Of a DNA stretch of 64,000 nucleotides, positions 11,258 to 29,305 are shown piece by piece. Location: sequence record KJ019103.1, one strand, 5' to 3'. The translations under genes were made by a program, and so were the position numbers. Every line of letters starts with the position of its first letter. Position 1 is the first letter of the stretch. Under the pieces are notes generated by a model, which worked only from the letters and a program-made list of their open reading frames with translations, did no database searches and was not told the DNA's origin.

Positions 11258-13311
11258 CAATTAAACTTGGTAGAATCGCTGACATTGAACCACAAAAGGA
11301 ACAGGTCGATGGTGGTGGATGGGCGTGGAGATATAAAGTACGCATCCTAGACAAACACTCACAGGATAAGAATGTTCTTCCTGATGAGGATCTACCGTGG
11401 GCACAGGTTATTATGCCTGTCACGGCAGGTTCTGGTGCTGCTAACTATGCAGTATCGCCTATGATTAACCAGGGTGACACTGTAAGAATTGAGTATTATG
11501 ATCTAGACGAACAACAACCAGTTATTACAGGTATCCTCCCTAGAACTAAAAAGGTTTCTACAGGTCCAGTGGGTGAGAACAATGGATATCTACCACACAC
11601 TGGTTATACAGAGAGGAGAGAACCGAACTCCAAACAGGTAAAGGATGAGTCACACGAATCTAATAAGGAAAGCCAAGTATCTACAAGATCTGATAGGTTC
11701 TCCAGTGTCATTGGTGATACTACAGTTCTAGCGGATAGTTGTGATCCTAATGCTTATAAGATTAACGCAGTAACTTCTGCTATCACTAATCTATTCAACC
11801 AGATTAATAACTTTGCTAATCAAGCGTCATACATTGAGACTATTACTCAAGCAACTATTGATAGGATTCATGCTATTGTTAATCCATATGTAGGACAAAT
11901 CTTCAATGGATTATTTGAGGGATTGGTTCCTATTCTCAACCAGGGTTTGGCTGCATTATACAAGAAAATATTCGCTCAAGTATTGGCTGCCACTAATGGT
12001 AATGTAATTGCTGCCACTGCTGCCGCAGAAGCAGCACTCATCGCACTTATGCCAGCTATTATGGCACTACAGGAAGCCATTCAGATGTTGGCATCTCTAA
12101 CAGTTGAGCAAATGTTAGACGAGATTGATTCCCTAGTTAGGGATGCAGTTGATAATAATGATGACTTCTCCCGTTGTGCGGCAGAAGACTTCGCTTCTGC
12201 TATGATCAACGATATTGTTGATAAGACTGATAATGGTATGCAACCACTACTAAACGCAGTCACTATTATTCTAGCACTCGCAAGTGTTGGTAGTGGATTC
12301 ACCGCTGGTACTGCTATTCGTAGTACTTTGGATGTTCTAAAAGATCTCACATCTGCTCTACTTGCACCAGGTCAAAGTGGTGGTGGTAATTGTGGTGGAA
12401 TCACAAAGGAATATGCATTTGGTATAGGTCCTGTGAAGGATGTGGGTGATGTTATGGATGCTCTTCTAGAGTCAGCAAACATAGCAAAGTCACTAGTAGA
12501 TGAGGCAAAGAAAACACAACAGGAAGTTGATGGTCTCCTAGACACATTTGGTGACTTCCCATTTATGAGTTCCACTACAAATATTATATCTAATCTAGAC
12601 AAGTGTTCCACACTAGAACCTACTACTTGTTTTGGTCCTGAAGTTGTATTATTTGGTGGTAGAGGTGATGGTGCTAAAGCTCGTGCTATTATTGGCAACA
12701 CAAAATCAAAATCAGATGATAGAATTGCTGGCAATGCACAGGGTGGCATTGTTGCTATTGAAGTTCTGGATGGTGGTTCAGGTTATGAGTACCCACCATA
12801 TGTGGATATCAGAGACAATTGTGGTCTAGGTATTGGTGGTGTTGGTAGAGCAGTCCTAAAGGGTGATAAGGTAGATAAAATCTATATGGTGAATATTGGT
12901 GAAGACTATCCTGGAGATGCACCTGGGGACTTTATTGTTGATACTATTATCATCGTTGATGGTGGCATAGGATATGAACCAGGTATTACTCCTGGAGGTG
13001 AATATGAAGTTATTACTGACCCAGATGGAACAGTAATTGATATTATTCCTACCAACCCAGTACCAATTCCTGGTCCTCCAACTATAAATATACCAGATGT
13101 ATCTCCACCTATTCCACCAGGAGGTAATATCATTGATGGTAATGTTGTAGATGAGAATGGTAAAGTAATAGCACCCGCTAAGATTGGTACTGGTTTAGTG
13201 TTCTATCCAGTTATCAAACAGATACCCCCACTTAAGGACCTCCTTGAGGGTAATGTTCCTGGATTTACACCGGAAGAAGTTGTATTCATTATTGATTGTA
13301 TTCAGAGTTAG
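11254..13311 (+). CDS. gp5: baseplate hub/spike gp5, N-terminal part
   Basis: OB-fold motif WRYKVRI...DEDLPWAQVIMPVTAGSG. Confidence 0.8.
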   Translation: MTIKLGRIADIEPQKEQVDGGGWAWRYKVRILDKHSQDKNVLPDEDLPWAQVIMPVTAGSGAANYAVSPMINQGDTVRIEYYDLDEQQPVITGILPRTKKVSTGPVGENNGYLPHTGYTERREPNSKQVKDESHESNKESQVSTRSDRFSSVIGDTTVLADSCDPNAYKINAVTSAITNLFNQINNFANQASYIETITQATIDRIHAIVNPYVGQIFNGLFEGLVPILNQGLAALYKKIFAQVLAATNGNVIAATAAAEAALIALMPAIMALQEAIQMLASLTVEQMLDEIDSLVRDAVDNNDDFSRCAAEDFASAMINDIVDKTDNGMQPLLNAVTIILALASVGSGFTAGTAIRSTLDVLKDLTSALLAPGQSGGGNCGGITKEYAFGIGPVKDVGDVMDALLESANIAKSLVDEAKKTQQEVDGLLDTFGDFPFMSSTTNIISNLDKCSTLEPTTCFGPEVVLFGGRGDGAKARAIIGNTKSKSDDRIAGNAQGGIVAIEVLDGGSGYEYPPYVDIRDNCGLGIGGVGRAVLKGDKVDKIYMVNIGEDYPGDAPGDFIVDTIIIVDGGIGYEPGITPGGEYEVITDPDGTVIDIIPTNPVPIPGPPTINIPDVSPPIPPGGNIIDGNVVDENGKVIAPAKIGTGLVFYPVIKQIPPLKDLLEGNVPGFTPEEVVFIIDCIQS

Positions 13312-13313
13312 AC

Positions 13314-14003
13314 ATGGCAGAACAAAATTGGGAAAGAAGAATACTCCAGAGTTTTGGTGCTAACTTTCGACTAGATGTTAGTAACCCACAGAAGACTGTT
13401 GGTGGTGAAGATGTATATAACTTCTACTCTGTTACAGATGAGGAGAAAGTATGTCTAATGGGACAACAACAGGATGGTCTCTGGCGCCTCTACAATGATG
13501 ATAAGGTAGAGATTGTAGGTGGTGCCAAAGTTGTTGAGGATGGTGTATGTGTAACTATTGTTGGTAAGAACGGTGATGTAGTTATTAACGCTGACAACAA
13601 TGGGAGGGTTAGAATCCGTGGGCAGAATATCAACCTCCAGGCAGATGAGGATGTTAATATCACTGCGGGTAGGAATGTTAATATCAAATCTGGTTCTGGT
13701 AGAACTCTCCTTGCGGGCAATACCCTGGAGAAAGACGCACTCAAAGGTAATCTATTAGACCCAGAGAAACAATGGGCATGGAGAGTATTTGAAGGAACTG
13801 GACTACCTGCTGGTATGTTCCCACAACTCATGTCACCCTTCAGTGGTATTACAGACCTAGCGGGATCTATTGTTGGTGGAGTTGGGTTCGGTGATGCAAT
13901 CAGTGGGGCTGTGAGTAGTGCAGTCAGTGGGGCAGTCAGTGGTGCTGTTGGTGGTGTCGCCGGTGATATTGCTGGTGACGCAATTGGTGGTATTATACCC
14001 TGA
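13314..14003 (+). CDS. gp5 C-terminal-like beta-helix spike protein
   Basis: beta-helical repeats (GDVVINA, GRVRIRGQNINLQADEDVNITAGRNVNIKSG); likely start MAEQNW. Confidence 0.6.
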   Translation: MAEQNWERRILQSFGANFRLDVSNPQKTVGGEDVYNFYSVTDEEKVCLMGQQQDGLWRLYNDDKVEIVGGAKVVEDGVCVTIVGKNGDVVINADNNGRVRIRGQNINLQADEDVNITAGRNVNIKSGSGRTLLAGNTLEKDALKGNLLDPEKQWAWRVFEGTGLPAGMFPQLMSPFSGITDLAGSIVGGVGFGDAISGAVSSAVSGAVSGAVGGVAGDIAGDAIGGIIP

Positions 14004-14009
14004 TAAATA
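14003..14009 (+). promoter_or_regulatory. late promoter
   Basis: ATAAATA upstream of the collagen-like gene. Confidence 0.7.
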
Positions 14010-14041
14010 TAAGAAGCACCTATAACTAGCACCTATTAGTA

Positions 14042-16831
14042 ATGGCAAGCATTCAATTCCCAGCAAATCCGAAAGTTGGTGATACTTACTACGACGTAGA
14101 TACAAATATAACTTACACCTGGGAGGGTGAATACTGGTTTGCAACAGGACCAGGCACAGGTATTGGTGCCACTGGAGCAACTGGAGCACAAGGAAATCAA
14201 GGTTCTAGTGGTGAAAAGGGTGAGCCAGGAACTCGCGGAATTAAAGGAGATACTGGATCTACTGGTTCTACCGGTCCCACAGGTCCTGGTGGTTTTATTG
14301 GATTAACAGGTGCAACTGGTCCTCAAGGTTCTCCCGGTGGTGCTACCGGTGCTACAGGTAATATTGGTCCTTTAGGAACTACTGGTGCAACTGGTCCTGA
14401 TGGTGCTAGTGGTGCTACAGGTATTCAGGGTCCTATTGGTACTCCAGGTGGTGCAACTGGCGCTACTGGTTTAGCTGGTCCTCCAGGAAATGTTGGTGCT
14501 ACTGGTCCTCTCGGTCCTAATGGTACTCCAGGTGGTGCTACTGGTCCTCTTGGTCCTGTTGGTTCTACTGGAGCCACTGGTGCTGGTGCTACTGGCTCTG
14601 ATGGTGCTACTGGTTCTACAGGTATTCAGGGACTACAAGGTTCCCCAGGTGGTGCAACTGGTGCTACTGGTATTGATGGTTTACTAGGTCCTATTGGTGC
14701 CACAGGTACTACAGGAGCTACCGGTGTTGATGGTCCTATTGGTGCCACAGGTACTACAGGTGCCACAGGTGAGACAGGTGATACAGGTTCAACCGGTGCT
14801 GCTGGTCCTACCGGTATTCCTGGAGCCACTGGATTTACTGGTCCCGAAGGTGCTACGGGTTCCAAAGGTGATGAAGGTTCTACAGGTAGTACAGGTCCTC
14901 AAGGTTCTCCAGGTGGTGCCACTGGTGCTACTGGTGTTGATGGTCCTGTAGGTTCTACAGGTGCCACAGCTGCTACTGGTGCAACTGGTCCTGACGGTCC
15001 TACTGGTCCCGCAGGTCCTACAGGTTTATTAGGTGCCACTGGTGCTACTGGTGATGATGGTTCTACCGGAGCCACTGGTGCTACTGGTTTTGGTGCTACT
15101 GGTGCTGATGGTGCTACTGGTTCTACAGGTTCTACAGGTCCTGATGGTCCTCTTGGTTCTACTGGTGCCACTGGTATTGCAGGTGGTGTGAGTCATGTAT
15201 GGTCACCAGATGTTTCTATCCTAACTGCCAACAACTCTTTCCTATTCACCCATGATGTAGACGAAGATATTAAGATCCTAAAGATCTCCAAGTTTAGTTC
15301 AACATTCACCAATGAGGAGGCACTACTTAATAGTTTTGCAATCGGTGATTCACTTAGACTAACATCAGGTCCAGCAACATTCCAATATACTGTTAGAGCC
15401 AATGGTGGACTCACAGTATCATCTGGTGTTGACGTGTTTATGTTACTCGTCAGTGATGGTTTCTTAGCATCTGGTAGTGGAACACTCAATGGTTCAACAG
15501 TTGTTCTTCAACGTCCCACATCATCCACCTTCGCTACATTTAACTTCGGTGTATCCACTATCAACTGGCCTACTACTGATGGTGATGTAACTATTGACTA
15601 TCCATTCCTAGTAAACAATGGTCCTAGGTATGTTGCATTCAATCAGAAGGATCTACTAGGTAGGGATGATGAGCAGTTCTTCTTTGAACCTTTAGTATCT
15701 ACAGACCTAAACTCATTCCAGTTCCAGGTTAAGACTACTAACTTCTTCAAATCAGAAATTGAAGGTGGTTACTACTATAGTGATATTGATGCCTATGTGT
15801 ATCTAACTGATATCACCGAACTATATTCAGATCCAAGTAATCCAGTAACCAGTGTGGGTTCACCTTGGAATGTTCAGGTTGTAGGTATTGCCTCCGCCAT
15901 TCCTGGTGTTGCTGGTTCTCCAGGTGGTGCAACCGGTGCTACTGGTCCTGCAGGTCCTCCAAGTGGTGCAACTGGTGCTACAGGTGATCTTGGTCCTATT
16001 GGTCCCGGTGGTCCTACTGGTCCCGTTGGTGTTAACGGATCCCCAGGTTCACCCGGTGGTGCCACTGGTGCCACTGGCGCTGATGGTGCTAGTGGTGCTA
16101 CAGGTTCTACAGGTGCCACAGGTGCATTCGTCACTGGTAGTAATCTTGTAGCTGGTATTGTTACAGCCACCACATTTGATGGTGATGCCACATCAGCTGA
16201 TAAGATTAAGACTAACCGATCCACCAGTGCGGCTGTTAACTATCTAACTTTCGTTGCTGATGATAACTCTGGTGGTGCTGTTAGTGAAACCCTCAAGACC
16301 AACTTGAATGTAAGTTTCATTCCTTCTTCTGGTGATTTTATCGCTAGTAGGATTACAGCAAGTAACAACTTCTACCTAGGTGGTACTGAGGTCAATTCTT
16401 CAGCATCTGAACTAAATGTGTTGGTTGGTGTTACTGACTTCTTAGATGAAGATAATATGGCATCCGATAGTCCTACGGCTATCCCATCACAACAATCAGT
16501 TAAGAGGTATGTTGACGCTAACGCTTTCTCTGGTATTACTACAGTTAGTATCCTAGTGGGCGCTGGTTCTAGTGATGTATACTTCGCAAGTTCTATTGTT
16601 CCAACTACCAATGAGTCCATTGACTTGGGTAGTATTGACTATAAGTTCAGAGACCTCTACCTATCAGACACAACCATATATACTAACACTGGTGAACTTA
16701 GTGTAGGTTTGAATACCACAGCACCAACCGCAAAGGTTGTTCTTGGTCCAGCACTACAAACAATTGTTCAACAGTCCACTGATTTTGATGACTTTAAGAT
16801 CAGAATCGCAGCACAAAGTTGGGGTGGCTAA
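14042..16831 (+). CDS. collagen-like (Gly-X-Y) virion fibre protein
   Basis: two Gly-X-Y blocks rich in GAT/GST/GPT; N-terminal [19 protein letters not shown] fibre motif. Confidence 0.8.
14156..15183 (+). repeat. collagen-like coding repeat block 1
   Basis: GGT-GCT-ACT-type 9-nt periodicity, interrupted by G(S/T)PGG units. Confidence 0.9.
15900..16130 (+). repeat. collagen-like coding repeat block 2
   Basis: same GATGATG / GSPGG units. Confidence 0.85.
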
Positions 16832-16834
16832 TTA

Positions 16835-17257
16835 ATGGGTTATCGTAATGAGAAAGCTCCCCACACTGGGAGCTTATTGGTAGGAACTGGAGGTAGAGTT
16901 ACTTTTACTGGTAGATCCTCTGGTGATATGAATAAGATTGCCACTTGGGGTGAAGAAGGGGGACAAATAGAATCCACCAACTTTTCTGATCTTCTGGCAC
17001 TATACGAGGAGTCTTTCGCGGTATCTATTGTCAGTGAAGATGAACCTTCGCTAAGACCTTTGGGTGAAGACCTAAAACTAGGAGATCTGTGGTATAGTAC
17101 GTCAGAACGGAGACAGTATGTTTTTACAAATGGAATTGATGACCTTCCAGTCACCTTTAGAGGCTGGACACCTGTTATTTCAGGACTTAGTACGATTGCT
17201 AACGGATTTATTGTATCCAATGGTATCATTGTTGGTGTGGCAGCAACAACTCCATAG
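16835..17257 (+). CDS. hypothetical fibre-associated protein
   Basis: GDLWYS motif seen in fibre proteins; follows the collagen gene directly. Confidence 0.55.
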   Translation: MGYRNEKAPHTGSLLVGTGGRVTFTGRSSGDMNKIATWGEEGGQIESTNFSDLLALYEESFAVSIVSEDEPSLRPLGEDLKLGDLWYSTSERRQYVFTNGIDDLPVTFRGWTPVISGLSTIANGFIVSNGIIVGVAATTP

Positions 17258-17292
17258 TATGGTATAATGGTGGGTAAGTATCTTATACCCAC

Positions 17293-17856
17293 ATGAGCCA
17301 CGAGCACGAAGATTACGAATTTGAAAAAGATTATTGGGGTGATTGTTGTAATACCTTCGATGAGGATCAGAAACACTATGTGTATGCCCGTCTAATGGGA
17401 TTAGAACAGGCACACTATAGTTTTCGTTTGCCTGGTATTTCTGTAATTGATATTGGTGGCGGTCCTTCTTCGATGTTATTGAAGACTGAAGGACTTACTA
17501 GAGGTTTGGTTGTAGATCCTATTTCATATCCTCAATGGACTAAAGATAGGTATTCAGTAAAGAATATTGAAGTCCATGTAGATGTTGGTGAGAATGTAAC
17601 AGAGACAGGATATGATGAGGTGTGGATATACAATTGTATGCAACACGCTATTGATCCAGAGAAGATTATTGCTAACGCAAGGGAAGCAGCACCAGTCCTA
17701 AGATTGTTTGAGTGGATTGATATTCCAGCACACGATGGTCACCCCCACGAACTAACAGAGCAATCACTAAATAAGTGGATTGGTCAAACCGGTAGTGTTA
17801 CATCTCTAGCAGAGAGTGGTTGCTATGGTAAAGCATATTATGGAGTATTTGAGTGA
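17293..17856 (+). CDS. class I SAM-dependent methyltransferase-like protein
   Basis: VIDIGGGP motif I; YDEVWIYNCMQH; TGGTATAAT extended -10 at 17260-17268. Confidence 0.65.
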   Translation: MSHEHEDYEFEKDYWGDCCNTFDEDQKHYVYARLMGLEQAHYSFRLPGISVIDIGGGPSSMLLKTEGLTRGLVVDPISYPQWTKDRYSVKNIEVHVDVGENVTETGYDEVWIYNCMQHAIDPEKIIANAREAAPVLRLFEWIDIPAHDGHPHELTEQSLNKWIGQTGSVTSLAESGCYGKAYYGVFE

Positions 17857-18944
17857 GTAATAAGTTTCGATTTCATATTCTCGGACTCCCCCATACTGTT
17901 ACGCATCCAGACTTCTCCGCATGTGCGTACACATCTAAAGTCTTAAAGTTCGGTAAGATGATGAAGGCACGTGGGCATGAAATCATTCACTATGGACACG
18001 AAGATAGTGAGTTGGTTTGTGATGAACATGTTACAGTAACTACCAACAAAGACTTAGAGATTGCTTATGGTGATTATGACTGGAGAAAGAACTTCTTCAA
18101 GTTCAATACATCGGACCACGCATATCAAACCTTCTACAAGAATGCTATTGAAGAAGTAGGTAAGCGCAAACAGAAGAATGATTTCATCCTACCTTTCTGG
18201 GGTAGTGGTACTCGTCCAGTATGTGATGCACACCCGGACATGATTTGTGTGGAACCCGGTATTGGTTATGCTGGTGGTCATTGGTCTCAGTGGAAAGTAT
18301 TCGAGAGTTATGCCATTCTCCATGCATACTGTAACCTAACATCAGTAGGAACCTGCAAACAGAGTTGGTATGAGGTTGTAATCCCTAACTATTTTGATTT
18401 AGATGACTTCACTTACGCCCCAGAAACTAAAGAAGACTATTTTCTATTCTTGGGGCGTGTATATAGCGGTAAGGGCATTGATATTGCTGTACAGGTTACT
18501 GAACACATAGGTGCTAAACTAAAAGTAGCAGGACAGAACCCAGAGAATAGAACTTTCCCACCACATGTGGAGTTTGTTGGATATGCTGATATTGAGATGA
18601 GACGGGAGTTGATGTCTAAAGCAAAGGCATCCTTTGTTGCATCACAATACCTAGAACCTTTCGGTGGTGTTCAGGTGGAGAACTTATTATCAGGAACTCC
18701 TACTATCACTACAGACTGGGGTGCTTTCGTTGAGAACAACCCAGACGGACTAACTGGTTTCCGTTGTCGTACATTCGGTGACTTTGTTGATGCCGCTAAT
18801 AACATTGACCAGATATCTCCTGCAGTATGTCGCACTTTCGGTGAGCAGTTTGCACTGGAGAATATTGCTCCCAAGTACGAGAAGTATTTCCAGGATGTTC
18901 TCAATGTATATACTGGAAAGGGATGGTATGAACTAAATGAATGA
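17853..18944 (+). CDS. GT-B glycosyltransferase (GT4-like)
   Basis: FLFLGRVYSGKG, EPFGGVQVENLLSGTPTITTDWGAFVE. Confidence 0.9.
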   Translation: MSNKFRFHILGLPHTVTHPDFSACAYTSKVLKFGKMMKARGHEIIHYGHEDSELVCDEHVTVTTNKDLEIAYGDYDWRKNFFKFNTSDHAYQTFYKNAIEEVGKRKQKNDFILPFWGSGTRPVCDAHPDMICVEPGIGYAGGHWSQWKVFESYAILHAYCNLTSVGTCKQSWYEVVIPNYFDLDDFTYAPETKEDYFLFLGRVYSGKGIDIAVQVTEHIGAKLKVAGQNPENRTFPPHVEFVGYADIEMRRELMSKAKASFVASQYLEPFGGVQVENLLSGTPTITTDWGAFVENNPDGLTGFRCRTFGDFVDAANNIDQISPAVCRTFGEQFALENIAPKYEKYFQDVLNVYTGKGWYELNE

Positions 18945-19530
18945 ACTAATACAAACGATTGATTGTATTACTCAAACTGAAATCAATACAATCAAAGAAT
19001 ATGTCCAAGATGATTGGTGGCAACCTACTACTATCTTTGGAATGTCTGGTTGTGAAATTAATACAGATGTTAGATCCAATGATAGAATATCTCTCCATGA
19101 TGATAGTATTGCCGCTCAGATTATTCATACGGGTATGAATAAGGCACTCCTTGAGTATAGAACACAACTCTATAATGTTGATCCATACTTCAACAATTAC
19201 CCAGTTCCAGGATCATATAGGACTAATTGTCATAGGGAAGGTATTCAACTCCTTAGATATAAAGAAGGACAACACTACAACTGGCATCACGATACTGCAG
19301 CAGATCGTGCAGTAAATGAGTATCACAGAACGATCTCTATTGTGTTATACTTATCAGATGACTTTGAGGGTGGTAGAACAGTCTTCCCTCACAGAGCATA
19401 CAAACCAAAAGCAGGTCAGGCACTAATTTTTCCCTCTAACTGGTGTTTCCCACATAAGTGTGAACCAATCACAAAGGGTGTGAAGTTAGCATCTGTTTCC
19501 TGGTACTATTCACATTATAACTATGACTGA
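18937..19530 (+). CDS. 2OG-Fe(II) oxygenase (prolyl-4-hydroxylase-like)
   Basis: YKEGQHYNWHHD (HxD), LYLSDDFEGG, FPHKCEPITKG. Confidence 0.9.
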   Translation: MNELIQTIDCITQTEINTIKEYVQDDWWQPTTIFGMSGCEINTDVRSNDRISLHDDSIAAQIIHTGMNKALLEYRTQLYNVDPYFNNYPVPGSYRTNCHREGIQLLRYKEGQHYNWHHDTAADRAVNEYHRTISIVLYLSDDFEGGRTVFPHRAYKPKAGQALIFPSNWCFPHKCEPITKGVKLASVSWYYSHYNYD

Positions 19531-19699
19531 AAATAAGACTACACCACAAACAGTAGAAGAAGCAACTCATGCTGCTTTCACTGGAAAGATGAACATGATC
19601 AAGTGTGCAGAACACTGTGGGATGACGATAAAACAGTTTAAATTAACCTTCCGTGAGTATCTAAAATACCACCCAATAGACGAAAATTATCCTATCTAA
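19523..19699 (+). CDS. small putative helix-turn-helix protein (missing from ORF track)
   Basis: own translation MTENKTTPQTVEEATHAAFTGKMNMIKCAEHCGMTIKQFKLTFREYLKYHP... Confidence 0.6.
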   Translation: MTENKTTPQTVEEATHAAFTGKMNMIKCAEHCGMTIKQFKLTFREYLKYHPIDENYPI

Positions 19700-19702
19700 A
19701 TA
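19697..19702 (+). promoter_or_regulatory. late promoter
   Basis: TAAATA upstream of the 1955-aa gene. Confidence 0.65.
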
Positions 19703-19733
19703 TATGTAAGCAAGTATATGATGGTACGGAACA

Positions 19734-22700
19734 TTGCCCCTTAATAAGTTAGAGAATTTCATTAAGAATACGGATGGACGTACTCTGTATGTTAATCCAA
19801 ACGATCTTAATGCTACTGATAGTATTACAAACCAAGGCACTTCCCTTACAGAACCCTTCAGAACTATTCAGAGGGCGTTAATTGAGAGTGCGCGTTTCTC
19901 ATATGTGCGTGGTGATGATAATGATCTCATCGAGAGAACCACCATCATGGTGTATCCCGGTGAGCATCCTATCGATAACCGTCCTGGTTTCGGTATTAAG
20001 ACAGTAGGTAATAGTCCGGTAGCGGTAACTCCTTCAGGTGAGTTGATTGATCCGTTCCAAGCATTTAACCTGACTGATGCTAGTAACTTTGATATTGAGT
20101 CTAGTAATAACGTTCTCTATAGATTTAACAGTATCTACGGTGGTGTTGTTGTTCCCCGTGGTACTTCTATCGTGGGTATGGACCTACGTAAGACAAAGAT
20201 TCGTCCGATATATGTTCCCAACCCCACTGATGATTCAGTAGATTACTCAGCGATCTTCCGTATCACAGGTACTTGCTACTTCTGGCAGTTCACCATCTTT
20301 GATGGTAATGAGAATGGTGTAGTATTCACTGACCCAAGAGATTTCTCTGAGAATAACCAGTCCAGACCCACTTTCTCACACCACAAACTAACAGCATTTG
20401 AATACGCTGATGGTGTCAACCCAGCGGTAGAATCAGGGTTTGAACTCACTGACCTTGCTATGTATTATAGTAAGTTGTCTAACGCATATAATGAAGCATC
20501 TGGTCGTCCTATTGATGAGAAGTATCCATCAGATCCTGGTGGTTTTTCACCACAACGTCCTGAGTTTGAGATTGTTGGTGCATTCGCAACTGACCCAATC
20601 AATATCACTCGTTTAATCTCTGGTGATGGTTTTGTCCCTGATGCTGTCATCACAGTAGATACACAGGTCCCACATGAACTAAACACTGGAACACCAATTA
20701 AGATTCGTGGTGTTGCCATCAGTGACTATAATATCTCTACAAAAGTATCTGCAGTTCTTAGTCCTACTAGGTTTACGTATAACCTATCATTCGTAAGACC
20801 TAACCTACCAGCAGAACCTTCAGTATCCTCTGCAACTGTAACCGTTGAGACTGATACTGTAACAGGTGCTTCACCATACATCTTTAACTGTTCGATGAGA
20901 TCAGTTTGGGGTATCAATGGAATGCACGCCGATGGTGCCAAAGCAACTGGATTCCGTTCCATGGTTGTTGCTCAGTTCACCGCGATCTCCCTTCAAAAAG
21001 ATGATAGATCCTTCGTTACTTATAATAAACAGGCACGTAGATACGATGGTATCAACGTCAATAAGACTGTAAGGGGTGCTGAACTATCTGCACAGTCATC
21101 TTCTACTAACTCAGCAACTGTATACCACCTAGATCCTGACGCTATCTATCGTCCTGACTGGGGTACAACTCACATCAAGATGAGTAATGATGCAGTCATT
21201 CAGATTGTGTCTGTATTCGCTATTGGTTTCAATCAACACTTTGCTTCTATTGGTGGAGCTGATGCATCAATCACAAACTCTAACTCCAACTTTGGTCAGT
21301 TTGCACTGAAAGCTGATGGATTCAAGAATGATGCTTTCCTCAAAGATGATAAAGGTTTCCTAACATCATTTGTTTCTCCTAAGAGTGCGTATAACCCAGA
21401 AACTGATGATGTTGAGATCATTGACTGGATTAACATTGACTTTGATCTAACTCGTAGTATTGCCTTTGCTAATCAACTCTATCTAACTGGTTATACTAAC
21501 GCGGAAGATAAACCACCAGTAGTTAATCAGGGTTTCCGAATTGGTGCCAACTACAAAGAGAGTCTCATTCAGAGAACAACAGTTGGTGCTGGTGCAGATG
21601 TAACCTCATCAGTAAGAATGTGTGATAATATTCTCGGTCCTGGTAACAATCAAGCCAATGGTAGTAGTGTTGCTAGGAAAGTATATCAAGTTCTAGCAGG
21701 ACCTATCAACAATACCCTCTCACTGGGTGTTCATGGACTACTTAATGGTGAGAGTGTAAGAGTATTCTCATCAACAGGTGACCTACCTGAGAACCTAGAA
21801 AGAGGTGCCCTATACTACGCAAATGTGGTTGATGGTGAGAATATTCGTATTGCTACTTCCGAGTCTAATGCACTCAACAACATCTTCCTCAACATCTATG
21901 GTGGTGTTGAACTTCGTGTTGAGTCTAGAGTTAATGATAAGGAAGCAGGTGAAAGAGGTCATCCCGTTCAGTATGACTACACTAACCAGAACTGGTTTGT
22001 TCATACTGATGCCAATAGTGATATCTATCAGTATATTGTAGCCAACCCAACCTCTACAGATGGTATTGACTTTGTATCCATATTCAAGAGATTTGGTGAT
22101 AACAGGGCACTAGAAGACAAACTATATCGCCTCAGGTATGTTATTCCTAAGGAGTCAAGGAACGCAAAACCACCTACCCCTGGTTATGTTCTACAAGCAT
22201 CAGCAACAACAGGTGCTAGGAATAACGATGACTTTATCCTACAGGATATTGGTATCAATGACTATGAATATAACAGAAACCCACGTTATATTGTAAGTTG
22301 TACTGTTATTGCTAATGAAGTTGAGGTTCGTAGTGAGATTCCACACAACTTGAATGTTGGTGATAAGATTAAAATAGTGAATGTTGCCAGTACAAATAAC
22401 ACTGGCGCATCACAAATCAAAGGTTTTAATGGTGAGTTCCTAGTTACTAGAGTTATCAACTCTCGTGAGTTTAGGTATGATATTACTGATGTAAATGGTT
22501 TTAGTAGAAATCCTGGTACCTTCACCAACAACATCAATGAAAGAAACATTCTTCTACCTCGTTATGAGAGAAAGGATCTACAGAGTAATGTATTCGTATA
22601 TCGTATTGAAACTATCACTGATTTCCTAGAAGGTGAGAGGGATGGTATCTACCACTTATTCCTTCTTAATGGTTCTAACCCAGTAACAGAGACATTCACT

Positions 22701-25601
22701 GATATCCAATACAATCAACCTGTGGAAGATTTATATCCACAGATGGATCCTGATAACCTTATTCAGAACCCCCCTGCAACCACAACGTTTGCTAAGAGGG
22801 CACCCCTAGGTGATGTTACTATTGATGAACAACAGAACTCCATTACTAAAGAGTCTGTTGATAAAATATACAAGACACTTAATGTTGGTATCATTGAGAC
22901 TGCTACTGATGGCACTGTTGGTGCTGGTGGAACACGTACAACCACACTAACATTCCAAAGAGAGCACGAGTTCAACTCTGTGTATAGTTACACCACACTA
23001 GTTGGTGGTGGTGGATATACTGATGGTACTTTCTATGATGTTAAACTACTCAGTGAGTTTGGCACAGTATGGGGAGGTGCTTCTGCTGTTGTTACTGTTA
23101 CTGCTGGTACAGTTACCGCAGTTACTATCATGGATCCTGGTTCAGGTTATTCTGCAGGTCAGACACTATTCATCGATGGAACTACAATTGGTGGTGGTAC
23201 TAACGCTACTATTAGTATTACTCAGGCAGACTTAGAGGATAACAAGCATAGTATCCTACAGATTTCTGGTGGTGCTTTGTATAACCCAGATTCATATGTA
23301 GTGATGACCAGTGTTGAGGATCAGTCTTCAGTTGGTGTTGCTAGAACTTCTGGAAGTCCTGCTATTATTCCTGGTATGTACGCATATCCAGCAGATAGTG
23401 GAACAGGTATTTCTTCAACTACATATAACTCCGATACAGGTTTAACAACACTAGTATCTACAGGTAGTGCTGGTTTTGGTCTTCAGAGGGGTAACACTTT
23501 CGTTGTATTCAGTAGTAACTATAGCTATCTCGGTAAGTTCTTTGTATCTAATGTTCCAACTCCAGATACATTGGAGTTCTACTCATACCGAGATCTAGGA
23601 ACTGTATCTATTGTAGGTAAGACAGGTTTAGATGTAAATGATGCTAACACTGGTTCCTTAGGTGAGAACGTGGGTGTTAGAGCTACACCACTATATGATA
23701 ACGGTGTATTCTATCTTGAACAGTCTTCAGGTACTGGAACACAACTAACAGTTAGGGCTGAAGATGGTGGTGTGGCTGGTAATGTAGACTCTAAGATGTA
23801 CCTAGGAAGATACTTCCAAATGGGTTCTGAGATTATCAGAGTTGCTAGTAAGAACTTTGATGGAGCCAATAACAATATCGTAACTGTTATCCGTGGTGCT
23901 CTTGGTACCGTTGTTAGCAACCTTCCCATTAATACTAAGGTGAAGGCAATCAGACCTTCCGCACTAGAACTTAGAAGACCTTCTATTCTACGTGCCTCAG
24001 GTCACACCTTTGAATATCTTGGTTATGGTCCTGGTAACTATTCCACTTCATTACCACAACTACAGGTTAAGCAACTCCCAGATGATGAAATTTACCTAGT
24101 ACAGGCTCAGGAACTATCCTGTGGTCAGGTTGTTTATACTGGTATGAGTGATAATGGTGACTTCTATATCGGTAATACCAAGTATTCCGCAACCTCAGGA
24201 ACACAATCAACCTTTGATGTTCCCATCCCAACTGTTGCTGGTCAACCAGGTAGTTCTAATAATGTTGTGTTTGATGAAGTTATCATCAACCGTCGTCTAT
24301 TCGTATCTGGTGGTGAAACTAATGAGGTTCAGTCACAGTTTGATGGTCCTGTTAAGTTTACCCAGTCTGTTACTATTCAGAACAATCTTTTCGTAACTGG
24401 TACAACTCAACTCAATAGAATTGAGATCACCAGTACAGAGAACGCAACCAGTTCTGCTAATGGTGGAGCACTAACTATCAGAGGTGGTGCTGCTATTGGT
24501 AAAGACTTCTATGTTGGTGGTGAAATGTACACCAACGCATATCAAATAGAAGATACAAGTGCAGTTCTTGAAATTGGTACTAACCAGTCATCTAAGGATA
24601 TCTCTGTTGGTGGTTCAACTGATACAGATAGAGTTGTTTTTAATACAACTAAACTAGCAACAGGTGAAGGTGCTGAAGAGGTAGTTAACGCAGACGCTGG
24701 TGTTGTTGTTGAGGGTGGATTAGTTGTTCGTGATGTTATTATCGCGAAAGAGTTTAGAGGTGCTGGAACTGGTGGTGGTCCTGGTACTATCCTACTCTGG
24801 GGTGGTTCTACTAGTGCTCTCCCTGACAGATATCTACTCTGCAACGGAGCTACTCTCAATAAAAACACATATAACAAACTATTCGAAGCCATTGGTTATA
24901 TCCATGGTGGTAGTGGTAATAGTTTTAAGTTACCAGATTTGAGAAATAGGTTTATCCCTGGTGCTGGTAGTTCTTATGCGGTAGCTGCAAAAGGTGGGGA
25001 TGATTCAGTTGTACTAACTGAAACGCAGATGCCACGCCACACGCACTCAACTTCAGCAGTCAACGCACCACATACTCACCCAGTATCGTTTACTAGTGGA
25101 GCGGCAAATGCACCACATAAACACCCAGCTGGCACAGGTGGCGGTGGAAATCATAACCACCCATCAGGTGGCACAGGTGGTGGTGGTAATCACAATCACC
25201 CATCAGGTGGCTCTAACAATACAGGCAACCATGGACACCCGTATAGTGCTCCGGGGCAATCCAAAACTGATGTTGCTAATTCTAACGAGAAGAATGTAAC
25301 TAGCAACGTCAATGCCTCAGGTGCAGGAACCGGTGGTGGTGGAGCACACTCCCACTCTGTTTCAGTTAACAGTACATCCTCAGCTCATAATCACCCAGTA
25401 AGTGTCAACTCTGGATCTTCAGCTCATAATCACCCTGTTAGTGTTAATTCAGCTAATGCACCACATTCCCACCCAATTAGTGGTAATGCAGGTTCTGCAA
25501 ACGCACCTCACGTTCACCCAATTGGTAATACTGGTGGTACTGCTTCCTTTGACAATAGACCCAAATACTACGCTCTCTGCTATATTATCCAATCAGAGTG
25601 A
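19734..25601 (+). CDS. large virion fibre protein with tail-collar domain and His-rich needle
   Basis: cyanophage structural N-terminus MPLNKLENFIKNTDGRTLYVNP; collar PGTILLWGG..LPDRYLLCNG..FKLPDLRNRF; 11 HxH motifs; C-terminal DNRPKYYALCYII. Confidence 0.8.
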   Translation: MPLNKLENFIKNTDGRTLYVNPNDLNATDSITNQGTSLTEPFRTIQRALIESARFSYVRGDDNDLIERTTIMVYPGEHPIDNRPGFGIKTVGNSPVAVTPSGELIDPFQAFNLTDASNFDIESSNNVLYRFNSIYGGVVVPRGTSIVGMDLRKTKIRPIYVPNPTDDSVDYSAIFRITGTCYFWQFTIFDGNENGVVFTDPRDFSENNQSRPTFSHHKLTAFEYADGVNPAVESGFELTDLAMYYSKLSNAYNEASGRPIDEKYPSDPGGFSPQRPEFEIVGAFATDPINITRLISGDGFVPDAVITVDTQVPHELNTGTPIKIRGVAISDYNISTKVSAVLSPTRFTYNLSFVRPNLPAEPSVSSATVTVETDTVTGASPYIFNCSMRSVWGINGMHADGAKATGFRSMVVAQFTAISLQKDDRSFVTYNKQARRYDGINVNKTVRGAELSAQSSSTNSATVYHLDPDAIYRPDWGTTHIKMSNDAVIQIVSVFAIGFNQHFASIGGADASITNSNSNFGQFALKADGFKNDAFLKDDKGFLTSFVSPKSAYNPETDDVEIIDWINIDFDLTRSIAFANQLYLTGYTNAEDKPPVVNQGFRIGANYKESLIQRTTVGAGADVTSSVRMCDNILGPGNNQANGSSVARKVYQVLAGPINNTLSLGVHGLLNGESVRVFSSTGDLPENLERGALYYANVVDGENIRIATSESNALNNIFLNIYGGVELRVESRVNDKEAGERGHPVQYDYTNQNWFVHTDANSDIYQYIVANPTSTDGIDFVSIFKRFGDNRALEDKLYRLRYVIPKESRNAKPPTPGYVLQASATTGARNNDDFILQDIGINDYEYNRNPRYIVSCTVIANEVEVRSEIPHNLNVGDKIKIVNVASTNNTGASQIKGFNGEFLVTRVINSREFRYDITDVNGFSRNPGTFTNNINERNILLPRYERKDLQSNVFVYRIETITDFLEGERDGIYHLFLLNGSNPVTETFTDIQYNQPVEDLYPQMDPDNLIQNPPATTTFAKRAPLGDVTIDEQQNSITKESVDKIYKTLNVGIIETATDGTVGAGGTRTTTLTFQREHEFNSVYSYTTLVGGGGYTDGTFYDVKLLSEFGTVWGGASAVVTVTAGTVTAVTIMDPGSGYSAGQTLFIDGTTIGGGTNATISITQADLEDNKHSILQISGGALYNPDSYVVMTSVEDQSSVGVARTSGSPAIIPGMYAYPADSGTGISSTTYNSDTGLTTLVSTGSAGFGLQRGNTFVVFSSNYSYLGKFFVSNVPTPDTLEFYSYRDLGTVSIVGKTGLDVNDANTGSLGENVGVRATPLYDNGVFYLEQSSGTGTQLTVRAEDGGVAGNVDSKMYLGRYFQMGSEIIRVASKNFDGANNNIVTVIRGALGTVVSNLPINTKVKAIRPSALELRRPSILRASGHTFEYLGYGPGNYSTSLPQLQVKQLPDDEIYLVQAQELSCGQVVYTGMSDNGDFYIGNTKYSATSGTQSTFDVPIPTVAGQPGSSNNVVFDEVIINRRLFVSGGETNEVQSQFDGPVKFTQSVTIQNNLFVTGTTQLNRIEITSTENATSSANGGALTIRGGAAIGKDFYVGGEMYTNAYQIEDTSAVLEIGTNQSSKDISVGGSTDTDRVVFNTTKLATGEGAEEVVNADAGVVVEGGLVVRDVIIAKEFRGAGTGGGPGTILLWGGSTSALPDRYLLCNGATLNKNTYNKLFEAIGYIHGGSGNSFKLPDLRNRFIPGAGSSYAVAAKGGDDSVVLTETQMPRHTHSTSAVNAPHTHPVSFTSGAANAPHKHPAGTGGGGNHNHPSGGTGGGGNHNHPSGGSNNTGNHGHPYSAPGQSKTDVANSNEKNVTSNVNASGAGTGGGGAHSHSVSVNSTSSAHNHPVSVNSGSSAHNHPVSVNSANAPHSHPISGNAGSANAPHVHPIGNTGGTASFDNRPKYYALCYIIQSE

Positions 25602-28524: not shown

Positions 28525-28733
28525 TGGATTTTGTGGCATTTATGATTGATAAGGAAAACGCCTTATCACTGATACAATCACTTCACGAATCTGCCGATAA
28601 GTGTAGTAAAGATGGAAGACGAATTATGGAAGCAAACTATACCAAACTAGCAGACATGATGATGGAACAATACCTAGTATCAGAGAGTATCCACAGGAAG
28701 AGAAAAAGAAATAACGGAGATTATATCGGCTAA
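28524..28733 (+). CDS. hypothetical protein
   Basis: coupled ORF. Confidence 0.6.
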   Translation: MDFVAFMIDKENALSLIQSLHESADKCSKDGRRIMEANYTKLADMMMEQYLVSESIHRKRKRNNGDYIG

Positions 28734-29305
28734 TGATTGACTATCTTACCATCCCTAATAGCTTATCAGACAAACTTTGTGACGACATCATTCACAAGTT
28801 TGACAGTGATGATAGAGTTGATTATGGTAAAATTAATATGGGAGATGTTGATACTGAGGTCAAAAGATGTAAAGAGTTGTTCATATCAATCCTAGATAAC
28901 TGGCGAGATCTTGACAATCAGGTATTCAATGCGTCGGTGAAGGGGTTAAGTCAATACCGTGAGTACATTAATGAGTTATACGATGCCGATTATCTTCTAG
29001 GATCAGATAATTCTGATCAAGGTTACCGGGTAAAGAGATACGATATTGGTGAAGATTACTTTCATTGGCATCATGATCTACGCATAGATGAAAACCGTAG
29101 GATGAGATCAGTTGCCTTCATATGGTATCTAAATGATGTGGAAGAGGGTGGTGAAACAGAATTTAGTAATGGTCTAAAGATACGTCCAGAGAAAGGTAAA
29201 CTACTTCTATTTCCATCTACATGGAACAACGTACACAGAGGGAATACACCAATAAGTAATACGAAGTATGCTATTACTAGTTTCCTCTATTCCTCCTACG
29301 ATTAG
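28733..29305 (+). CDS. 2OG-Fe(II) oxygenase
   Basis: YFHWHHD, IWYLNDVEEGGETEF, FPSTWNNVHRGN. Confidence 0.9.
   Translation: MIDYLTIPNSLSDKLCDDIIHKFDSDDRVDYGKINMGDVDTEVKRCKELFISILDNWRDLDNQVFNASVKGLSQYREYINELYDADYLLGSDNSDQGYRVKRYDIGEDYFHWHHDLRIDENRRMRSVAFIWYLNDVEEGGETEFSNGLKIRPEKGKLLLFPSTWNNVHRGNTPISNTKYAITSFLYSSYD

Follow-up and report, generated by a model that had tools for sequence, protein, structure and literature searches.

Gene content and organization of the locus

A cluster of closely spaced genes at positions 14042–19530 of the analyzed window (the whole 64,000-nucleotide stretch, nt 1–64000 of record KJ019103.1) encodes a collagen-like tail fiber followed by a predicted methyltransferase (MT), a glycosyltransferase (GT), and a 2-oxoglutarate (2OG)-Fe(II) oxygenase resembling prolyl-4-hydroxylases (P4Hs). 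The source is Synechococcus phage ACG-2014f isolate Syn7803US44, a T4-like cyanomyovirus (Kyanoviridae, Atlauavirus). A first-pass annotation of the window had singled out this stretch, which matches KJ019103.1 at 100% identity over the same coordinates and whose bounds coincide exactly with gene limits in that record. According to the record annotation, the cassette lies in the baseplate/fiber module, directly after a gp5-like hub gene; the record names its genes, in order, "collagen triple helix repeat protein," two hypotheticals, "group 1 glycosyl transferase," "PiuC," a hypothetical, and "putative short tail fiber." These genes, with the open reading frames (ORFs; lengths in amino acids, aa) that flank the enzymes, are as follows:

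14042..16831, + strand: collagen-like tail fiber gene, 929 aa, Syn7803US44_16 (Pfam Collagen, 3.6e-41; PHROG tail-fiber families; record annotation)
16835..17257, + strand: 140-aa ORF (phrog_3608; N-terminal matches to phrog_36982; no Pfam match)
17293..17856, + strand: class I S-adenosylmethionine (SAM)-dependent methyltransferase-like protein, MT, 187 aa (predicted fold and motifs)
17853..18944, + strand: soluble GT-B glycosyltransferase, GT, 363 aa (Pfam Glycos_transf_1, 1.8e-12)
18937..19530, + strand: P4H-like 2OG-Fe(II) oxygenase, 197 aa, annotated PiuC (Pfam 2OG-FeII_Oxy_3, PF13640, 3.8e-18)
19523..19699, + strand: 58-aa ORF, Syn7803US44_21 (record annotation; position kept in relatives)
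19734..25601, + strand: giant fiber gene, 1955 aa, "putative short tail fiber" (record annotation; synteny)

Stop and start codons overlap by 4 nt between MT and GT, by 8 nt between GT and the oxygenase, and by 8 nt between the oxygenase and the 58-aa ORF, an operon-like arrangement that bears out the coupling previously proposed for the enzyme genes. Their placement within 0.5 kb of the fiber also holds (462 nt separate fiber and MT), but the interval is not empty, as the 140-aa ORF within it had been overlooked. At least 80% of the block is covered in 45 records, with 97.8%–100% identity among the listed ACG-2014f isolates. Each gene of the cassette is individually ordinary and previously annotated; it is the comparative pattern, described below, that is new.

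The collagen-like fiber

The fiber carries 134 Gly-X-Y triplets in 13 runs (counting runs of at least three triplets), distributed between two blocks:

aa 1–41 (14042–14164, + strand): N-terminal conserved domain
aa 42–383 (14165–15190, + strand): collagen block 1, 110 triplets
aa 384–621 (15191–15904, + strand): central non-collagen domain, 238 aa
aa 622–696 (15905–16129, + strand): collagen block 2, 24 triplets
aa 697–929 (16130–16831, + strand): C-terminal fiber domain, 233 aa

These long Gly-X-Y runs place the protein among the collagen triple-helix repeat proteins (PF01391), and it presumably forms a trimeric helix; textbook collagen geometry (a rise of ~0.29 nm per residue) would give rods of roughly 98 nm and 21 nm. 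The earlier description of more than 100 triplets, often with Thr at Y, agrees with our counts: Thr occupies the Y position in 58 of the 134 triplets (0.43), including 32 GAT, 13 GST, and 5 GPT. Pro occurs 41 times in the repeats (29 at X, 12 at Y; 0.31 per triplet), and Lys is found at Y in only three of the 134 triplets.

A PGGATG-containing motif is present in seven copies within aa 42–696, where it carries 7 of the 12 Y-position Pro residues and, by one extra residue, shifts the triplet register. This motif was considered as a target of the oxygenase and rejected; because it is found in collagens accompanied by GT only and is missing from those accompanied by the oxygenase only, it is a lineage feature and not an oxygenase signature.

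Enzyme families

The enzyme classes named in the first-pass annotation (SAM methyltransferase, Glycos_transf_1 glycosyltransferase, and P4H-like 2OG-Fe(II) oxygenase) were confirmed. Matches to PF00534 (1.8e-12) and PF13692 (2.5e-10) identify GT by sequence as a GT-B enzyme of Glycos_transf_1, the Pfam family that holds CAZy GT4, and all 59 relatives share the E268-x7-E276 motif unchanged. The closest solved relatives are glucosylsucrose synthase 7fg9, the best PDB match (8.7e-18), and cyanobacterial pteridine glucosyltransferases (PMC9909042), with similarity restricted to the donor-binding half. Pfam family and nearest solved enzymes together suggest that GT is probably GT4-type and retaining. 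No transmembrane segment is predicted in GT, MT, or the oxygenase; because they are soluble, the enzymes could reach newly made fiber chains in the cytoplasm.

Nearest in sequence to the oxygenase among PDB entries are the P4Hs of Bacillus anthracis, Chlamydomonas, and PBCV-1. All 31 orthologs compared retain H117-x-D119, H173, and K183, the last lying 10 residues past H173 as it does in P4Hs, and the best 50 Foldseek matches in the PDB to an AlphaFold2 model (pLDDT 90.8) are all prolyl hydroxylases. Its modeled double-stranded beta-helix fold and catalytic residues place the protein in the P4H-type 2OG-Fe(II) family (PF13640) as a predicted prolyl hydroxylase.

The MT has no match in Pfam or NCBIfam, and its PHROG (3603) is labeled "unknown function." A search of the PDB with Foldseek, using an AlphaFold2 model built from 30 homologs (pLDDT 90.2), returned SAM methyltransferases for all 50 listed matches, and the best 500 all had E ≤ 0.001; these structural matches include the sugar O-methyltransferases EvdMO1, RebM, and AtmM, as well as protein N-terminal methyltransferases. 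Motif I (D53, G55, G57) and D75 are invariant across the 30 homologs. By its modeled Rossmann-like seven-strand fold and motifs only, the MT is a class I SAM-dependent methyltransferase. PDB sequence matches to designed repeat proteins ("Cake," "Scone") consisted of many weak repeated segments and were discarded as spurious; the fold search decided the family.

All 692 MT homologs identified are unnamed. Within cellular genomes (GTDB, 185,579 species), the family appears at only eight loci, all on contigs of metagenome-assembled genomes (MAGs), several of which look phage-derived and again contain GT and collagen genes. The best BFVD match is a 664-aa GT-MT fusion (A0A6J5QUJ2, 53% identity), and a GT homolog is present in 14 of 19 MT clusters with flanks, mostly overlapping MT, as compared with an oxygenase in 5 and a collagen gene in 7 of the 19. 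Homologs of GT form fusions with members of the 187-aa MT family in A0A6J5QUJ2 and in two of the loci fetched for this study (L056, L122; L-numbers label fetched loci throughout, e.g., L015–L018 are IMG/VR contigs), with FkbM/Methyltransf_21 in L076 and L077, and with Methyltransf_23/11 in L085, L095, and L163; additionally, a free Methyltransf_23 occupies the MT slot in L080. Because this non-orthologous pairing recurs across three methyltransferase families, GT and the methyltransferase would appear to act on one product, most simply a methylated sugar. Gene context thus ties the MT to GT and not to collagen. Methylation of the fiber had been proposed previously; the MT is indeed present and coupled, but the fusions of GT homologs to three different methyltransferase families make a sugar the more likely target than the fiber protein, and the MT is probably a sugar O-methyltransferase.

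Co-occurrence of enzyme and collagen genes

Relatives of GT were retrieved at 80 IMG/VR loci (69%–96% identity). Grouping them at 85% identity gave 24 clusters, and in 20 of these the flanking sequence extends for 8 kb or more. A collagen ORF (at least 20 triplets) lies within 8 kb of the GT relative in 14 of these 20 dereplicated contexts and is the adjacent gene in 8; the largest contain up to 417 triplets. For the oxygenase, orthologs of at least 41% identity with readable upstream sequence provided 12 contexts, in 11 of which collagen fibers adjoin the oxygenase; the remaining context has a fiber with six triplets. Co-occurrence of the enzyme genes with the collagen gene had been set beforehand as a check on the proposed pathway, and it was found both here (14/20 GT contexts) and in a syntenic set described below (15/16 oxygenase loci).

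Gene order is well conserved among marine relatives: in all five of L076–L080, GT is followed by MT or a second GT, and these by the oxygenase, a small ORF, and a giant fiber, with large collagen fibers upstream in four of the five. The order oxygenase-MT-GT-collagen-collagen is found at a different place, just before the gp13–15 neck genes, in another T4-like myovirus (L029–L031). At L080:5539-7455, a Peptidase_S8 (subtilisin-like) gene stands between the collagen fiber and the GT-MT-oxygenase genes. Two uncultured marine viral contigs (L011:1-15794, L013:1-11002) show collagen and oxygenase genes in alternation (collagen, oxygenase, collagen, collagen, oxygenase, collagen, collagen).

Cultured phages offer few examples. 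The MT is found among them in ACG-2014f only, and GT in ACG-2014f, S-CAM7 (85% identity), and S-CBWM1 (31%; another genus). S-CAM7 encodes two collagen fibers, GT, a second GT-like protein, the oxygenase (58%), and a giant fiber, in that order; in S-CBWM1, GT lies directly 3′ of a collagen-like tail fiber with 67 triplets. Close orthologs of the oxygenase among cultured or recorded phages are limited to S-CAM7 and Marine virus AG-345-F15, the latter with the oxygenase 44 nt past a Gly-Pro-Pro-rich collagen fiber and with no GT.

Covariation of collagen composition with enzyme presence

A less biased sample was drawn from 80 loci fetched by the giant-fiber gene alone, of which the 43 with at least 6 kb of upstream sequence were tabulated for an oxygenase ortholog and for collagen (at least 20 triplets). 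The counts are given below with Fisher p-values that are to be read as upper bounds on significance, since the phages share ancestry and were retrieved by similarity, so that the values overstate independence.

All 43 loci: both 15, oxygenase only 1, collagen only 9, neither 18 (p = 1e-4)
Dereplicated at 95%: both 8, oxygenase only 0, collagen only 7, neither 17 (p = 6e-4)
Closest subgroup only: both 15, oxygenase only 1, collagen only 9, neither 5 (p = 0.07)

The composition of the collagens is more telling than these counts. Pro-rich collagens (at least 0.5 Pro per triplet) occur at 9 of 15 oxygenase-positive loci versus 0 of 12 oxygenase-negative loci. For Thr, 159 distinct collagen ORFs (at least 30 triplets) were pooled from all fetched loci and divided by their distance from a GT homolog: of the 82 ORFs lying no more than 6 kb from such a homolog, 75 have Thr at 30% or more of their Y positions, as compared with 10 of the other 77 (Mann–Whitney p = 8e-22, uncorrected for phylogeny), and several of these 10 exceptions are close to a more distantly related GT. 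In the marine clade, the fraction of Thr at Y is 0.30–0.49 in GT carriers; in their GT-less syntenic relatives it is mostly ~0.00–0.07, with a few higher values of up to 0.81 (L204). The same pattern recurs with GT relatives down to 26%–33% identity (S-CBWM1, L037–L041, L068, L070).

These two associations are separable: GT accompanies Thr-rich collagens whether or not the oxygenase is present, and in marine relatives that lack GT the oxygenase goes with collagens that are often rich in Pro. We therefore interpret hydroxylation and glycosylation-plus-methylation as distinct predicted modules, both of them present in ACG-2014f on one fiber of mixed composition.

Oxygenase paralogs

The oxygenase family is large, with 624 places in 351 records by tblastn, three of them in the ACG-2014f genome. 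A second P4H-like oxygenase within the window (28733–29305, + strand; 33% identical; best PDB match the B. anthracis P4H; annotated "hypothetical protein") lies downstream of tail-fiber-like genes. Distant paralogs adjoin virion genes or, in other phages, helicase genes, with no collagen nearby. The contexts of paralogs in S-SSM7, S-RIM2, and P-SSM3 were considered as additional support for a collagen association and rejected, as they have no collagen genes near and speak against a general rule. Because paralogs are common where no collagen gene is nearby, "P4H-like" alone says little about a collagen substrate. Previous studies have described up to 24 2OG-Fe(II) oxygenase genes per cyanophage genome (PMC9602691) and have linked these enzymes to 2OG/nitrogen stress or DNA repair (PMC3037559, PMC9602691); a 2022 paper termed the viral use of P4Hs "cryptic" (PMC9301287). 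At L015–L018 (e.g., L018:340-10383), four to eight 2OG-Fe(II) oxygenase paralogs stand in tandem, with no collagen near in three of the four loci.

Neighboring genes and regulatory sequence

The 140-aa ORF between fiber and MT contains no collagen repeats and has no Pfam match, but it shows homology with the N-terminal domain of a second collagen-like fiber (S-CAM7 gp015, 41% identity; L078), with matches in L076, L077, L078, and L080. This second fiber is full-length in S-CAM7 (637 aa) and L078 (695 aa) and 140–167 aa long in ACG-2014f, L076, and L080. Homologs of the 58-aa ORF, for which there is no family match, lie 3′ of the oxygenase in S-CAM7 (62% identity), L075, and L079. The giant fiber, which is without collagen repeats, is the conserved downstream neighbor of the cassette, in synteny in S-CAM7, AG-345-F15, and L077–L080.

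Scans of 13200–20000 for sigma-70 promoters and terminators found sites no more frequent than in shuffled sequence, and the T4 late-promoter motif TATAAATA has three matches in the window (3.7 expected), none directly before cassette genes. An extended −10-like sequence, TGGTATAAT, is found at 17258–17266 (+ strand), in the 35-nt gap just 5′ of the MT start, where the two-hexamer scan had missed it; it might serve as the enzyme genes' own promoter.

A putative fiber-modification cassette and its alternatives

The enzyme and fiber families with their catalytic residues, the operon-like linkage of the genes, and the way presence and composition covary across viruses are best explained if these genes form a cassette that modifies a virion fiber, which we consider probable. 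The support is comparative, and it is from such comparison that substrates, sites, and the order of steps are proposed. The P4H-like oxygenase, with Fe(II), 2OG, and O2, would hydroxylate Pro in the Gly-X-Y repeats (41 Pro, 12 of them in canonical X-Pro-Gly), presumably on unfolded chains by analogy with known P4Hs. GT would move a sugar from a nucleotide sugar to the Thr hydroxyl at Y, for which there are 58 candidate sites, and the MT would O-methylate the added sugar; the likely outcome is a fiber both stabilized and coated with glycans. The first-pass annotation had envisaged a single pathway by which the phage hydroxylates, glycosylates, and methylates its own fiber. Modification of the fiber is retained here as the best explanation, on the grounds of co-occurrence and covariation, but as separable modules and not as one obligatory pathway.

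Several observations weigh against this interpretation. No collagen gene is found in the flanks of 6 of the 20 GT clusters or inside those of 12 of the 19 MT clusters. In L034 (1914–5789), a T4-like myovirus with no collagen nearby, oxygenase-MT-GT follow another methyltransferase, a beta-1,4-glycosyltransferase, and a kinase-like gene, and these extra sugar genes suggest a larger glycan pathway. L079 has GT and the oxygenase beside a fiber of only six triplets, and L232 has the oxygenase but no collagen gene. The association of oxygenase and collagen is weaker within the closest subgroup, the samples are related as noted above, and P4H-like paralogs are frequent in cyanophages without a nearby collagen gene (S-SSM7, S-RIM2, P-SSM3). 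The closest solved relatives of GT, glucosylsucrose synthase and pteridine glucosyltransferase, use small molecules. To our knowledge, hydroxyproline is not required by bacterial collagen-like proteins.

Some of these observations would fit an unlikely variant in which the enzymes modify another virion protein, either the giant fiber downstream or a second fiber of which the 140-aa ORF is the N-terminal remnant. The order oxygenase, small ORF, giant fiber is kept in every marine relative; the S-SSM7 oxygenase (35% identical) is upstream of a giant-fiber homolog and the S-RIM2 oxygenase (29% identical) just downstream of one, with no collagen gene near either; and L079 retains both GT and the oxygenase, its fiber being nearly devoid of collagen repeats. 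However, GT relatives accompany collagen genes in phages without the giant fiber (S-CBWM1, L029–L031, L085, L127–L151), the content of Thr at Y and of Pro in the collagen repeats covaries with the presence of the enzymes, and the giant fiber has no comparable repeats. Glycosyltransferases in the hypervariable fiber region of marine myoviruses are usually read as acting on the host (PMC7029224, PMC12801897), and GT and MT might by the same logic remodel an envelope glycan such as O-antigen or surface polysaccharide, blocking superinfection or changing a receptor, with their adjacency to the fiber being incidental; the L034 module, inside its larger sugar-gene cluster, is consistent with this. 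Such a role leaves the specific adjacency to collagen genes and the Thr-at-Y covariation (75/82 vs. 10/77) unexplained, and is further disfavored by the lack of membrane segments in the enzymes and by the near absence of the MT family from cellular genomes (8 loci, all MAGs, in 185,579 species); we regard it as improbable.

We similarly doubt that the genes are unrelated cargo of a variable island, in which the oxygenase would hydroxylate host EF-Tu or a ribosomal protein or consume 2OG, and a small glycoside would be the product of GT and MT. Bacterial P4H homologs do modify EF-Tu (PDB 4iw3 and 5v7y are among the structural matches), the literature ties these oxygenases to 2OG/nitrogen stress or DNA repair (PMC3037559, PMC9602691), and the best solved GT relatives use sucrose and pteridines; yet four genes are coupled by stop/start overlaps, GT-MT fusions recur beside collagen genes, and an ortholog-specific association with collagen, together with the Pro-rich covariation, is hard to obtain by chance. 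DNA modification, previously listed as an alternative, is poorly supported. Phage 5mC / TET / glycosyl-5hmC hypermodification systems contain the same three enzyme classes (methyltransferase, dioxygenase, glycosyltransferase; 10.1101/2023.12.21.572611), and the glycosylation candidates listed for Rhizobium phage RL38J1 include a GT that is structurally most similar to 7fg9 (PMC13326640). However, the oxygenase is not TET/JBP-like, matching PF13640 only and not Tet_JBP, with protein prolyl hydroxylases as its best 50 structural matches; the 187-aa MT is not a DNA methyltransferase, having a fold of the small-molecule or protein type and no C5/N6 DNA methyltransferase match; and the genes sit in the fiber module, not in the nucleotide-metabolism module. 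A DNA hypermodification module is accordingly very improbable here.

Comparison with known systems

Fiber modification of the kind proposed for ACG-2014f has partial counterparts elsewhere. Glycans of Bacillus BclA include O-methylated sugars. In Clostridioides difficile, SgtA, whose gene neighbors bclA3, attaches O-linked sugars to Thr within GPT collagen repeats (PMC7157674), so that both the immediate adjacency of a GT gene to a collagen-like surface-fiber gene and the Thr acceptor in G-X-T triplets resemble the arrangement described here. The SgtA-BclA3 and BclA systems belong to bacterial spore surfaces and have no prolyl hydroxylase, whereas the ACG-2014f cassette is viral; moreover, SgtA is of the O-GlcNAc-transferase type, and no SgtA was among the relatives returned by searches with the cassette proteins.

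Mimivirus encodes collagens, the L230 lysyl-hydroxylase domain, and a collagen glucosyltransferase (PMC5802723, PMC9546862), and is likewise a virus combining collagen-like proteins with a 2OG-oxygenase and a glycosyltransferase. It differs in being a giant eukaryotic virus with an animal-type, hydroxylysine-linked route; the cassette has Lys at Y in 3/134 triplets, an oxygenase that is P4H-like and not lysyl-hydroxylase-like, a different GT family, and an added methyltransferase. No lysyl hydroxylase is among the closest sequence or structural relatives of the oxygenase. With the small monomeric P4Hs (PBCV-1 vCPH, Chlamydomonas, Bacillus anthracis) the oxygenase shares the fold, the HxD...H triad, the Lys 10 residues after the second His, and a length of ~200 aa; it differs in having only ~20% identity to them and an N-terminal half specific to the phage ortholog group.

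Work attributed to Freeman et al. in 2023 reportedly found that mycobacteriophage GTs glycosylate the phages' own virion proteins (capsid and tail-tube subunits, in siphoviruses); neither collagen repeats nor prolyl hydroxylation is known to be involved there. The cassette likely differs from all four systems in combining tailed phages, collagen-type tail fibers, a probable Thr (not hydroxylysine) acceptor, and an added methyltransferase. In the searchable literature, we found no link of cyanophage 2OG-Fe(II) oxygenases or fiber-region GTs to collagen-like fibers, and no description of small P4Hs as bacteriophage fiber modifiers.

Implications for aquatic phages

More tentatively, and with some doubt outweighing confidence, we suggest that aquatic T4-like myoviruses may widely make "glyco-collagen" tail fibers, in which a dedicated GT family, usually paired with or fused to a methyltransferase, coats G-X-Thr rods with methylated sugars, and that one ortholog group of cyanophage oxygenases may be a true collagen prolyl hydroxylase. 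If so, no bacteriophage before would have been known to make a hydroxyproline collagen, and a concrete function would be in hand for part of an enigmatic oxygenase gene family unexplained since the first cyanophage genomes. The tie to Pro-rich collagen fibers gives this ortholog group a directly checkable function, and the unnamed methyltransferase family, of ~690 proteins, would gain a provisional annotation. Fiber-region GTs are usually read as host-surface modifiers (PMC7029224); the link between GT and Thr-rich collagens suggests that some decorate the virion. For some of the most abundant viruses in the ocean, glycans on the fibers could influence host recognition and stability as well as losses to grazing or enzymatic attack.

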